Shown here: positions 3,748-63,849 of the stretch, piece by piece | How positions within the stretch are numbered: position 1 is the stretch's first letter | Layout: the number at the start of each line of letters is the position of its first letter | Origin: Gracilinanus agilis | Lineage: Eukaryota | DNA: 64,000 nt | Direction: 5' to 3' | Assembly: GCF_016433145.1 (NCBI RefSeq) | Contig: NC_058132.1 | Span: 656,211,039 to 656,275,038 of the forward strand | Position numbers and translations under genes: made by a program | The notes under the pieces: model-generated | Told to the model about the DNA's origin: nothing | What the model saw: only the letters and a program-made list of their open reading frames with translations | Database searches by the model: none

Positions 3748-4010
3748 GGGCAGCTAGCTAGTGAGAGCAGTGGATAGAGTGCCAGGTCTAGAGTCAGGAA
3801 GACTTATCTCCCTGAGTTCAATTTTGGCCTCAGATACTAGCTATGTGACCCTAGGCAAGTCACTTAACCATGTTGGCCTCAGTTTCCTAATCTATAAAAT
3901 GAATTCATGGAGGAAATAGCAAACTACTTTAATATCTTTGTCAAAAAAACAAACAACAACCAACCCAAATGAGGTCATGAAGTATTGGATACAACTAAAA
4001 ACAACTCAAA
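3748..4010 (+). mobile_element. Mar1-type CORE-SINE (RTE-like tail)
   Basis: tRNA head, CORE, and a tail resembling gaaatagcaaactact...ctttg...atgaggtcatgaag. Confidence 0.75.
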
Positions 4011-4856
4011 AACAATTACATAAATAATTACACCAATGACGTCTTGTCATTTCAATCCCTCCTTTGACTTTTATATTCTTAACACATTGAAAATGCCTCT
4101 TTGTGGTAGAAAGGCAGCTTTCCTGGTTTTCTCCTGAACCTGATCCCTCTTAGGAGGCTAAAGGTAAACCAACCAGCAGCATGCAAGACTAGAAGCAAAG
4201 GACCTGCCCATCTGGGAAGTAAGGGGCACAGATTAAGGATCAGGAATCAAGAAGTGTGGCAGAATCCAAAGTGCAAAGCCAAAGAAAGGGTTAAAAAAAA
4301 GGGCAGTGGAAGGGGGTATCTTAGCAGAGCCAAAAGTTAAGCACATCTCGCTCTCTGCTCATTGATCTGGGAGCTGGCCAGTAGTTAGGGATGAAGGCTT
4401 CAGTTCACCTTTGCATCCTTCTGTGTGGGAGGCAGCTGTGCCAGCAACAGGGGGGACATCGGGTTCTAGTCCAGGCTCCAACACCGAGTGACCTGGGGCA
4501 AGACATTTCTTCATGTCCTCATCAGTCAAGAGGCTTGGACTAGATCTTTCCAATTACTTCAAACTCGAAGGCCCTCTTGTTCTTTTCCTTTCAACAAAAA
4601 GACCTAAGTAGGGGTGGGCTCGGGAACCGTGCCAATGCTTCCAAGCTCTCTGATTTTGCCAGTGTGCACACTTTATTGATGCAAAGTCTTCATCTTCCAG
4701 AGTCGCCGTGGCCAAAAGATTCATTACGGTGTGGCCAGCTTGTTGTTGAGCCTCTTGATCGGTCATTTAACAAACGTTTATTAAGCACCAATTTTATGCC
4801 AAGGTTAGGGTTTGAAATAGCATTGGGAATACAGACAAAAGGATAACTCCCTCTGA

Positions 4857-4860
<4 letters not shown>

Positions 4861-4920
<60 letters not shown>
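4861..4920. repeat. (GT)30 microsatellite
   Basis: Perfect dinucleotide run. Confidence 0.98.
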
Positions 4921-4926
<6 letters not shown>

Positions 4927-10985: not shown

Positions 10986-11165
10986 TTTTTTTTTTTTTAA
11001 CCCTTAACTTCTGTGTATTGGCTTATAGGTGGAAGAGTGGTAAGGGTGGGCAATGGGGGTCAAGTGACTTGCCCAGGGTCACACAGCTAGGAAGTGTCTG
11101 AGGCCGGATTTGAACCTCCTGTCTCTAGGGCTGACTCTCAAACCACTGAGCTACCCAGCTGCCCC
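10986..11165 (-). mobile_element. Young opossum SINE-1-type element
   Basis: Full length; 18-bp TSD with two mismatches (10968-10985 / 11166-11183). Confidence 0.9.
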
Positions 11166-11345
11166 CAATCATGATTACTTTCTGACTCCAACAAAGTACA
11201 GTTATTGGAACCTACCAATCTGAAGACTTCACGTGACAGTGTAGAAATCATGCCATGCCTATTGCCCCGACCCCCTTGCCAAACGGTCAACCAATCAATC
11301 ATCCAACAAGTATCTATTAAGCACCTGCTAAGTGACGAGCATTGT

Positions 11346-11545
11346 GGGGCAGCTGGGTGGCTCAGGCGATAGAGAGCCAGGCCTGGAGTGGGGAGGACCT
11401 GGGTTTGAATCTGGCCTCAGACATTTCCTAACTGGGGAATTCTGAGAGAGTCACTTATCCTAATTGCCTAGCCCTTCCCACTCTTCTGCCTTGGAACCAA
11501 CACTTACTGGAAATTCTAAGACAGAAGGTGAGGGTTTCTTAAAAA
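11346..11545 (+). mobile_element. Older long-tail CORE-SINE
   Basis: ggggcagctgggtggctcag head through a ctaagacagaaggtgagggttt tail. Confidence 0.85.
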
Positions 11546-13357: not shown

Positions 13358-13512
13358 TACACACACACACATATACACGTGTGTCTATATATACGCATAT
13401 ACTCATACATGTATATATATACACGACATACATGTATGTATATATATTGCATAAGCATGTATTTATGCATACTTTAAAAGTGGGAGAGGGGTGTGTGTGT
13501 GTGTGTGTGTGT
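13358..13512. repeat. Compound CA/TA/TG microsatellite region
   Basis: Seen directly. Confidence 0.85.
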
Positions 13513-31300: not shown

Positions 31301-34300
31301 NNNNNNNNNNNNNNNNNNNNNNNNNNNNNNNNNNNNNNNNNNNNNNNNNNNNNNNNNNNNNNNNNNNNNNNNNNNNNNNNNNNNNNNNNNNNNNNNNNNN
31401 NNNNNNNNNNNNNNNNNNNNNNNNNNNNNNNNNNNNNNNNNNNNNNNNNNNNNNNNNNNNNCAAACCAAGAAAACAGTAAGCAGAAATAAGCATTATTTA
31501 CCTTTTTTTGCCCAAAAAAGCTTGTTTTGAAAGTAGCTTACACATCTCATTGTTTTGAAAACAGAAAACAAAACTTACGTTATTTCTGCTACTGTTTTCC
31601 TGGCTAGGAAAGCGTGTGCAAAGGGTAACTTACCAGGCTGTCTGAACCAGGGTTAGATTCCGTTCACATTCTAAGACTTGTAAATACATAACAATGATCT
31701 AAGGGGAAAGGAAGAAACACAGAATAATTACCCAATCAGTTAATTCAGGCAAATGTAACAGGTGTGCATAACTTGGTAAACTAAAATCTTAAGGCCAAGT
31801 TCAAAGATGTTAAAACTAATTAGTTCATCTTCATTTGCCAAGTAAACGGGAATAACTTTTTTTTTTTCTCAGTTGTGTCTGACTCTTCCATCCTCCACCC
31901 CCACCCCCCAATTTGGGTTTTTCTTGGCAAAGACACTGGAGTGGTTTGCCATTTCCTTCTCCAACTCACATTTAAATGGGATTAAATGACTTGCCCAAGG
32001 TCATACAGCTAATAAGTATCTGTGGGCAAATTTGAACTCAGGTCTTACTGACTCCGGGCCCCAAACACCACCTAACAATTTCAAAAACTGTCTGTAGACA
32101 GTATCCTAATTTAATCTATGAAAATGTACTGAAGGCACGTTAGTCAGCGGGCATCACCAGTATTTCTAAAAGCGCAGAGCCGTGATCAACCATCCAGTTT
32201 GATAAAGAAGTCGCAACATCTAAAGAGCAGCTACACAAGCCTATTTATTATTAAACGGATCCCCAAACTCATTTGATGGACGCCTGGAACTCACCTTGTG
32301 CGGGTGCTTGACATGAACACAAAATCCCAACTCCTTCAATACCCTTCTCTCTGCCTTGATTACTTGATTTTTGGTGTTTATGTAGTTCTGATCAAGGATC
32401 AGGGGGCTTGGCGTCCTAGTTTGTAAGAAATAAAATCACAACTGTTTTGCACATCCAAACAAGTTTATTCGTGGCATCTCCATTTTCCCTTCCAACCAAC
32501 TATTGGCAACAGAAACCAGCTTTTTAAACTCCTGCAAACAAGTTAAAGCATTGATCTTGTGCTGTCCAAGTTAGGCTAATCAAACACACAGAATGATTTG
32601 ACATTCATTCCAAAAGGAACTTTGCTGAAGTCACTTACTCCTTTGTGTTCTAAGAATGCCTGCTAATGTGAAAAGTCTTAATATCCAGTTAACAAATGCA
32701 TCCTCCTGGCTGCAGGATTCTAAACAAAAATGATCACGCTTTTCAATGGCAAATGTAATGACGTCATTCTTCTCAGATAAACATCGCAGACATAAAAGCT
32801 TAAAAACATTTGTGGCAAATTATTTCTGAAAAGGCTTTCATAAGCTTCCCTACAAAGTACAGGAAGTTATTTTCAAGTTTTAACACAAAGGATTTACCTT
32901 TAAAGATAAAAGGAATACCCACAATCAGCAGTATGCTTTGTAAAATGGCAAAGCACAAATTAATATTTGTCTCAATTCTAGGCTCACCTACTATGGCTCA
33001 TCTTAATGCAGAATGAAGATCAGCTAAAGATTAACGGTCATCACGTTAGCAATTAGCCCAAGCATTTAAGTGGCCTCAGAAAGCCTAATGTAGGTAGGGC
33101 TGCATTACTTGTTCATCTATTTAATTAACCCAAATCTTTCCAAAGGCCCCTCCATTGCAAAAGCTAACAAGAATCTGAAAAGCCAAGGGGACACGACTAC
33201 GATCGGAGAGCATTTGTTAAGGAATTCACCAAACTCGAGCCAAGAAGCAAACTTATTAAACTGACCCGAGTTTCCATAAACATGCAATACAGCATATGCT
33301 ACTTGGTGTAAAATGAACAGAAATGAGAGTAGCTCTTAGAGAACAAAGGCCTCCATATTGGGTAAAGGAAGATGTAGAAAGGCCAGTGATTCAAGTGTTT
33401 GGAGAAAAGCCATGAGGCCACTTCCTATTTACACACTTGCTTTCTAAAGTCAGAACCCCAGAGCAGTGCTCAAGTGAAGCACTTTTCCCCCCATCATCAC
33501 ATATTCAAGGAGTTCACTCTATTTCGGGAATACAGATGCTTTAATAACTTCTGCAGACAATATAAAGGCCTGAATTTTAATGAAAAGCTTTTCATATTTA
33601 TCTGAATATTATCTTTAAATCTACATTGTGCCACAATTCCTCTGCTTTACTTAAGCCACTGACAGAACATGCAAAGGGAAGAAACTCTCATTCCCCCATA
33701 TCAGGCAAATGATTCTCACAATTAAAATATAAGCATGTTTGCCATCATGTGACAAGAACCACATTTAGTTTTCGGATTTCTTATTTTGTTGTTGAAAAAG
33801 AAAAGCCAAATAATCACAGCAAAGCCTACCAGGTTCTTTCCTTAAAAGCTGCCTTTCACTACAGGTACGGACATCAAAAAGATCAGGTCCAAAATACCTA
33901 TTTTTAGCAGATTTAAAGACAAAAATTGTCTTCATGTGGCTAATAAGCCATTTTGTGGTCAAGAACACAGTGGACTGGATGTGTGAACTTTTCTGTTACA
34001 ATACCTGAATCACACACAAGCCAATGGACCATCTGTTGTCTCCCTCCCAGATTCATATGGAAAAGCGGGGAAGGAAAGGGGTCTATGGATGGTGTGCTTA
34101 AAAATGACCCCCGCTTATTACCCATCTATCCAACAGGATCACAGATTTATAAGTGGATGAGAACTTGGTTTGAGGTGAGCTAATCCAGCCCTCCTTTTCT
34201 AAATGAGGGCAGGGAGGCCCCAGGTCAGGACAAATGAGTCTCTAAATCCAGCCTCCTTCCAACCACACCCAGCAGTGGCCCCATTCTAATGGGGAGGAAC

Positions 34301-50648: not shown

Positions 50649-50702
50649 ATATATATATATATATATATATATGTATTTAGTATATACATATATATATATA
50701 TA
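50649..50702. repeat. (TA)n microsatellite
   Basis: Seen directly. Confidence 0.9.
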
Positions 50703-51344
50703 TTTTTTTTTTAAACAAAACTTTCAGTGCCTTTCCTTTTTCTCTTGAGTACAACTATGTCAAAGGTCAGAAGACCTGGCAGTCAGTGTTCTTGTGACTG
50801 ATAGTAATTTGTTTACATTCTGTAACTATCCATAGAGATCCTAGCTGCTGTAGTTTATCCAGAAAGCTGTTTGAATAGTGGAAGGAACTGCAGGAAGTTC
50901 TGGCTTAAGTTTTGGTGTAGGAGGAATGTTTGCCTGGTCATGGATCCAGCCTACGTAGCACTGTGTTTATAAAGATAAACTGGGGAAAAGCTAGAAGGGA
51001 CTTTTAACAGATGAGGAAAGTCAGGTAAAGAACAGTCATCTGAACTGGCTAAAAGTCCAATTACATGTCTAAGTGTCTGAGCTCTGCCTCCAAAGTCAGT
51101 GTATACCTGCTGCTCATAAAGAAATTCTACCAGTTGAAAGCCATTTGGGTCCACTAGGAGACAAGACTAGAAGTTGGCTTTGCTCCCTCTCCAATCAGGG
51201 AATATACAAAGAAATCTTCAAAAGTGCTTCAATGAATTGTTTCAGGACTGGTTAGGGCACCTATCTCTAGTAACCTGACACATCTAATAAAAATGTGTAG
51301 ATAGCAAAATTACTGCCAGGAAGATCAAAAGGGCTAAAAGGAGG

Positions 51345-63610: not shown

Positions 63611-63849
63611 TGACATATATATTTATATGGACAACTAAATTTGAACTATTATGATCAGATTGCTAATAATAGTGTCTTGATTTTTAAAGATAAAATAAAA
63701 TGTATTTTTTCTCATTCACATGCTTGAAAAGGTTATTTTTAAAGCGACAGTCATCAACTGATCCTTTAAAAATCAAGACACTATTATTAGTAATCATTCA
63801 TCTAGAAAAAATCCAAATTAGAAAAGTATTAACTTTTGCCTGGCATTGT

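Follow-up and report, generated by a model that had tools for sequence, protein, structure and literature searches.

The subject of this article is a predicted RNA hairpin in intron 5 of CCNL1, the gene for cyclin L1, in Gracilinanus agilis. The gene lies on the minus strand of the window, the stretch of 64,000 nucleotides (nt) that was analysed at its full length (NCBI RefSeq assembly GCF_016433145.1, contig NC_058132.1, positions 656,211,039 to 656,275,038 of the forward strand), and its coding exons were placed by a tblastn search with a marsupial CCNL1-like protein (Table 1). Four coding exons map upstream of exon 5 and the hairpin-bearing intron, which extends from 31633 to 29756, is therefore intron 5. 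Cyclin L1 activates its partner CDK11, a kinase whose phosphorylation of SF3B1 activates the spliceosome. CCNL1 and CCNL2 form a paralogue pair that has been studied for synthetic lethality, and cyclin L1 dosage is relevant to cancer. The poison exons of splicing regulators rank among the most conserved non-coding elements of vertebrates and, to our knowledge, little is known of what sets their inclusion.

The hairpin in CCNL1 intron 5

The exon 5 donor reads CTG/GTAAGT, such that read-through continues as TGG TAA and meets an immediate stop codon. The hairpin begins 30 nt past the donor G at 31633 and agrees in every stated element with the initial annotation, a note made earlier from the sequence of the window alone. 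On the minus strand, 31603-31580 pairs with 31490-31466 through 23 Watson-Crick pairs and one G-U pair (G31600-U31469), with one bulged U (31479 or 31480) and a loop of 89 nt, and the G-U pair is a wobble on the CCNL1 strand only. Two further pairs, G31604-U31465 and A31605-U31464, extend the helix outwards. The 5' arm carries 13 A's in its 24 nt, one UAG triplet included, and 19 of the 25 bases of the 3' arm, which ends 4 nt short of a run of N's, are pyrimidines.

On folding, a segment of 179 nt yielded -53.6 kcal/mol (z score -4.4), a value matched by none of 200 dinucleotide shuffles, and the arm duplex alone, with the outer pairs included, contributes -35.3 kcal/mol. Within a context of 439 nt, encompassing exon 5 and part of intron 4, the 24 stem pairs show pair probabilities of 0.91-1.0, except for A31590 where pairing is split between two U's, and the outermost added pair, A31605-U31464, has a probability of 0.64. 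These results support the hairpin, which is predicted to form with high probability.

Table 1. Positions in the window of the CCNL1 exons and of the elements of the intron 5 hairpin
Feature	Position	Strand	Basis or remark
CCNL1 coding exon 1	about 40501-40142	-	tblastn, marsupial CCNL1-like protein
CCNL1 coding exon 2	39993-39913	-	tblastn, marsupial CCNL1-like protein
CCNL1 coding exon 3	39330-39214	-	tblastn, marsupial CCNL1-like protein
CCNL1 coding exon 4	about 32480-32292	-	tblastn, marsupial CCNL1-like protein
CCNL1 exon 5, 65 nt, codes for 21 residues and TG	31698-31634	-	sequence and tblastn
Exon 5 donor, GTAAGT	31633-31628	-	sequence; invariant across the six species compared in the text
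5' linker, donor to 5' arm, pyrimidine-rich with YAG end	31627-31606	-	sequence
5' arm, purine-rich, 24 nt and 2 outer pairs	31605-31580	-	sequence and folding
Loop, 89 nt	31579-31491	-	sequence
3' arm, pyrimidine-rich, 25 nt and 2 outer pairs	31490-31464	-	sequence and folding
N run, 268 nt	31461-31194	-	putative place of poison-exon branch point, 3' splice site and first base
CCNL1 exon 6, productive acceptor, NYMNDSL…ARALQ; further coding exons beyond	29755-29656	-	tblastn

Conservation of the helix among jawed vertebrates

Named CCNL1 proteins were obtained by word matching to the translation of exon 1 and, after that, by searching with a lizard protein of 340 amino acids; genes were then fetched for the tenrec Echinops telfairi, the pigeons Columba guinea and C. 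livia, the gecko Eublepharis macularius, the frog Xenopus laevis, the shark Mustelus asterias and the teleost Triplophysa dalaica. A Trichosurus vulpecula gene labelled "cyclin-L1-like, low quality" was rejected as an intron source because it is an intronless CCNL1 retrocopy, in which 1582 nt (301-1882 of the fetched record) encode 526 residues. The six-sequence comparisons given below are those of the window, tenrec, pigeon, gecko, Xenopus and shark.

In tenrec, the two Columba species, gecko, Xenopus and shark, the two arms recur 25-30 nt past the same donor, and folding yields the same helix, of 23-26 pairs, for every stem-bearing species, with z scores of -5.9 for tenrec, -3.6 for pigeon, -2.1 for gecko, -2.6 for frog and -2.1 for shark. 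The mammalian helix is nearly perfect, and those of frog and shark are weaker and more interrupted, at about -25 and -22 kcal/mol, respectively. The initial annotation had proposed looking for the complementarity in other species, and it is thus present in all of these lineages and lost in one teleost. T. dalaica lacks the helix, its duplex of -5.5 kcal/mol being worse than those of shuffled sequences and its fold z score being -0.6. On the sequences compared, the helix is shown to be at least as old as the common ancestor of sharks and tetrapods, occurring in six gnathostome lineages. The ccnl1a gene of T. dalaica (3854-4098 of the fetched record) still has, at the usual distances, the sequence for the poison-exon peptide (VHDGKC) as well as both outer motifs, AGACCAG and CATGGCT.

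The window contains other long inverted repeats, consisting of microsatellites and an inverted pair of tRNA-like SINEs (short interspersed nuclear elements), and the case against a chance origin therefore lies in conservation and not in length alone. These repeats lend some credence to the view that the hairpin is a chance inverted repeat or the functionless relic of a transposon of the MITE (miniature inverted-repeat transposable element) kind. We nevertheless regard such an origin as extremely improbable, given an orthologous helix in six lineages back to shark that lies at the same offset from the same donor, together with the absence of a second copy of the arm within the window at up to 4 substitutions and of any family in an Rfam scan of the window at the gathering threshold. 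Neither the multiple copies nor the lineage-restricted insertion that would mark a transposon-derived inverted repeat was found, in accordance with the earlier statement that no transposon explains the stem, which occurs once in the window and is orthologous from shark to mammals.

A combinatorial count of inverted repeats over the window did not provide a useful null, as it was swamped by microsatellites and SINE pairs; low-complexity tracts of the microsatellite type at 4859-4922, 13358-13512 and 50649-50703 dominate counts that tolerate G-U pairs. The inverted SINE pair, at 11088-11430, has a complementary run of 30 bp and its element resembles the marsupial MAR1-type SINE; with the Leu in ERNLTLVQ, this resemblance would point to a marsupial as the source of the window. 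Close to the end of the window, at 63658-63795, there is also a near-perfect, AT-rich inverted repeat of 32 bp spanning 138 nt.

Among the six species, the arms have mean pairwise identities of 84% (5' arm) and 83% (3' arm), compared with 40% in the 5' linker and 33% in the loop. Loop length ranges across species from 60 to 174 nt and the length of the 5' linker stays steady at 25-30 nt. The 5' arm constitutes a conserved island between two drifting stretches, and complementarity to the 3' arm is its only evident property.

The substitutions within the arms are informative with respect to pairing. At one position the window, tenrec and shark have a C-G pair, Xenopus has U-G, and pigeon and gecko have U-A. 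The 5' arm of Xenopus carries four substitutions, each of them A-to-G or C-to-U, and all retain pairing as G-U. A change of U to A in one arm of tenrec, and of A to C in the other, moves the bulge and maintains the helix, while the shark helix, with six changes in its middle part and a shifted bulge, still has 24 pairs. Three pairs show changes on both sides. Pair-breaking changes number one in gecko and two in shark, and a single helix position is mismatched in all the non-mammals and G-U in the mammals.

The consensus fold comprises 23 pairs, with 95.5% of cells paired as against 35-54% when the 3' partner was slid by 1-3 columns. Column shuffles reached the observed pairing in 7 of 2000 cases and the covariation score in 43 of 2000. 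Compensatory or pair-preserving substitutions are therefore present beyond the level of sequence conservation, with modest support from six sequences. Moreover, in five of the six species the sense duplex exceeds its antisense counterpart in stability, and in gecko the two are equal. The sense duplex contains up to six G-U pairs and, where these are numerous, the gap is wide, the sense and antisense values being -24.6 and -15.6 kcal/mol for Xenopus and -21.9 and -15.7 kcal/mol for shark. This bias argues for an RNA helix of the CCNL1 transcript, rather than a DNA palindrome or an antisense RNA.

These data also bear on the suggestion that the two arms, placed at the edge of an ultraconserved block, are separate binding elements for single-strand-binding proteins, a purine-rich enhancer and a U/C-rich silencer, with complementarity arising as a by-product, or that the element acts at the DNA level. 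Such a view would accommodate the high primary conservation of the arms (83-84%), the outer motifs that outlive helix loss in the teleost, and the moderate level of support from the column shuffles. It is less easily reconciled with the compensatory exchange of C-G for U-A, with the double changes that shift the bulge in tenrec and shark, with Xenopus 5' arm changes that are without exception transitions pairing as G-U, or with a 5' arm that forms an isolated conserved island, and the greater stability on the sense strand is not required of a DNA palindrome. We consider the suggestion improbable. Taken together, the pattern of conservation, the substitutions, the consensus controls and the strand bias favour conservation of the pairing and not of the sequence alone, and support the hairpin as a genuine structure of the sense-strand RNA of CCNL1.

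The adjacent poison exon and candidate mechanisms

Annotated short CCNL1 isoforms from many species end in …VQTAW followed by VVHDG… or VVPDG…, with a stop a few codons on, which indicates that a poison exon is spliced to exon 5. Inclusion of this exon should end the protein at …VQTAW-VVHDG… and should direct the mRNA to nonsense-mediated decay. CCNL1 has been listed among the genes with a conserved poison exon in a preprint (PMC12026817). In the five orthologues with the stem, the poison exon starts 66-71 nt past the 3' arm, and the sequence between the two ends in AG; within it, the A of a yUnAy motif falls at -32 to -34, and another AG is found at -38 to -47. As regards position, therefore, the link with poison-exon use that was suggested earlier is upheld, since in all five the hairpin immediately precedes the conserved poison exon of CCNL1.

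In tenrec, the interval orthologous to the N run of the window has the same length of 268 nt, and similarity resumes on both sides of the run, with 31193-31102, downstream, showing 89% identity to tenrec. Given the equal lengths, the run looks like a masked conserved block and not an assembly gap, and it should hold the poison-exon acceptor, at about 31399/31398, and the predicted branch point, at about 31430. The initial annotation considered the 3' arm to be the polypyrimidine tract leading into the gap. The arm is indeed pyrimidine-rich and ends just short of the N run. In the orthologues, however, it lies 66-96 nt upstream of the poison-exon 3' splice site, with both the predicted branch point and the AG at -38 to -47 located in between, and it probably does not serve as the working tract of that acceptor.

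Two other splice-site-like sequences occur close to the hairpin. The 5' linker, in the window and in the tetrapod orthologues, is a pyrimidine tract with a YAG end and resembles a 3' splice site located 25-30 nt from the donor; among tetrapods its sequence drifts, with its length and its pyrimidine/YAG character being maintained. A perfect GTAAGT is present at 31578-31573 (minus strand), where the base of the loop follows directly on the 5' arm, and its GUA is partly paired at the helix apex. This motif is common to the window and tenrec and missing from pigeon, gecko, frog and shark, and could represent a 5' splice site, either pseudo or alternative, that is specific to mammals. A segment of 25 nt would be bracketed by this motif and the YAG ahead of the 5' arm.

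A validated precedent for a helix in this kind of location is the intronic stem-loop of SF3B3, which precedes a poison exon and conceals branch sites (Li et al., NAR 2024, PMC11162794). By analogy, the CUUAC or CUGAC of the CCNL1 3' arm, taken with the U-rich tract that follows and with an AG some 20-30 nt past the arm, might represent a cryptic or alternative 3' splice site hidden by the helix, whose opening would alter the choice of acceptor or the frequency of its use. A yUnAy motif does occur within the 3' arm in five of the six species, where an AG lies between this second motif and the annotated acceptor, and the AG at -38 to -47 falls 20-30 nt past the arm in all five orthologues. However, in tenrec the candidate branch A is replaced by C, the annotated short isoforms take the downstream AG, and a well-placed conserved yUnAy is available at -32 outside the helix. 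With 24-26 pairs upstream of the poison exon, whose peptide begins 66-71 nt downstream in the orthologues, the helix has the at least seven continuous pairs of an SF3B3-type stem. Neither the best conserved predicted branch site nor a flanking nucleotide is paired within it, that motif being located at -32 to -34 and the helix end at -67 to -72. Concealment of a branch site is therefore possible but unlikely in our estimation.

Alternatively, the helix could act as a platform for dsRNA-binding proteins (ADAR, ILF3/ZFR, STAU or DHX9), resulting in editing of the 5' arm or in altered splicing or nuclear retention. Its length is in the range generally bound by dsRNA-binding domains, the mammalian form is close to perfect, and the A-rich 5' arm includes UAG. 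That triplet is, however, not conserved, being AAG in tenrec, UAA in gecko and UAU in shark, the frog and shark helices are the interrupted ones of lower stability, and no report of CCNL1 editing or of dsRNA-binding proteins on CCNL1 was found in the literature searched. We give this possibility little weight.

Since the helix has been kept from shark to mammals, it is very likely, judging from the comparative data, to be a real structure for the control of splicing. The mechanism that we prefer, with a probability of roughly 0.55, is that the hairpin tunes splicing of exon 5 to the poison exon by a zipper-like geometry, by masking of sequence, or by both. With arms only 60-174 nt apart, the hairpin would fold during transcription, ahead of the poison-exon branch site. 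Folding would shorten the path from the exon 5 donor to the predicted branch point by 110-225 nt, which are looped out, and leave about 25-30 nt and about 33-37 nt of single strand between them, about 60-65 nt in total. At the same time the purine-rich and U/C-rich tracts would be masked from single-strand-binding proteins, and helicases could expose them. The hairpin would thereby set the extent to which exon 5 is joined to the poison exon or to exon 6 and, hence, the level of productive cyclin L1 mRNA. Maintenance of the length of the 5' linker, while its sequence and the loop length vary, suggests that distance from the donor matters, and this steady distance would fit a geometric role better than masking alone. 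Our best guess is that the folded state would promote use of the poison exon.

Several points weigh against this tuning role. The teleost has the poison exon and no stem, and the stem is thus not indispensable for having that exon. The outer motifs AGnCCAG and CAUGGCU survive in the teleost in the absence of the helix, and may have a sequence-specific role of their own. A vertebrate intron of 200-290 nt has no obvious need of a zipper, and the -32 branch point of the orthologues is predicted from a motif and not mapped. Finally, the covariation derives from six sequences of high primary conservation and its statistics are modest.

The initial annotation envisaged an RNA-structure switch. A search for alternative partners of either arm, from -700 to +1600 nt in five orthologues, yielded none at a consistent position, and a switch between competing helices is not supported. 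A more elaborate proposal is that the hairpin acts as the sensor of an autoregulatory loop dating back to the origin of the jawed vertebrates, in which its folding state, or U1/U2 docking, couples poison-exon splicing to the activity of CDK11-cyclin L and SF3B1. This we consider rather unlikely; were it correct, cyclin L1 output would be held constant by an RNA structure and not by a protein-binding motif. For the tuning role that we prefer, a compact and very stable helix at fixed distances from the donor (25-30 nt) and from the poison exon (66-71 nt) offers a precise and testable handle and, if RNA structure does set cyclin L1 output, steric-blocking oligonucleotides directed against one arm would provide a way to shift it.

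Comparison with known systems

No description of the CCNL1 hairpin was found in the full-text literature searched, and it is best placed by comparison with three groups of intronic helices. The SF3B3 stem-loop, like the CCNL1 hairpin, is a conserved intronic helix just upstream of a conserved poison exon, with arms that are maintained in both sequence and pairing. Both genes also belong to the U2/spliceosome-activation pathway, in which cyclin L1-CDK11 phosphorylates SF3B1. They differ in that the SF3B3 stem has 14-17 bp, a loop of 5-8 nt and branch sites inside (PMC11162794), whereas the CCNL1 helix has 24-26 bp and a loop of 60-174 nt, with 66-71 nt separating its end from the acceptor and about 33-35 nt from the predicted branch point, both of which lie downstream. 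The screen that accompanied the SF3B3 work folded only the last 120 nt of introns (PMC11162794) and could therefore not have found the CCNL1 pair.

The zipper stems of yeast are exemplified by those of RPS17B and RPL7B (Rangan et al., NSMB 2025, PMC12350175). The CCNL1 linkers, of about 28-30 and about 33-35 nt, fall within the published positional limits when the predicted branch point is used, these limits deriving from models of the yeast spliceosome (PMC12350175), and in CCNL1 the loop length is free and the linker length is kept. The zipper stems were defined and tested in constitutive introns of Saccharomyces cerevisiae and are poorly conserved in sequence (PMC12350175), whereas the predicted CCNL1 helix belongs to a vertebrate alternative splicing unit and its conservation extends over hundreds of millions of years.

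Pairs of conserved complementary regions (PCCRs) are known to control poison exons, including BRD2 exon 3b and BRD3 exon 5b (PMC10789245), and have been catalogued (PMC8052449). They share with the CCNL1 hairpin conserved complementary intronic boxes that are tied to unproductive splicing, and in CCNL1 such boxes occur at orthologous positions in distant species. The 138-nt hairpin is not among the CCNL1 entries of the searchable PCCR tables (PMC8052449), where the listed pairs are 4.9-9.2 kb apart with energies of about -15 to -17.5 kcal/mol, although the full catalogue may well hold it. In BRD2 the paired regions are located in the introns flanking the poison exon and pairing represses its inclusion, and in BRD3 pairing occurs inside intron 5 and also represses its exon (PMC10789245), whereas both arms of the CCNL1 hairpin lie upstream of the poison exon. 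On present comparisons, the predicted CCNL1 helix is unusual among the intronic helices associated with poison exons for its age, its length and its zipper-like placement wholly upstream of the exon.

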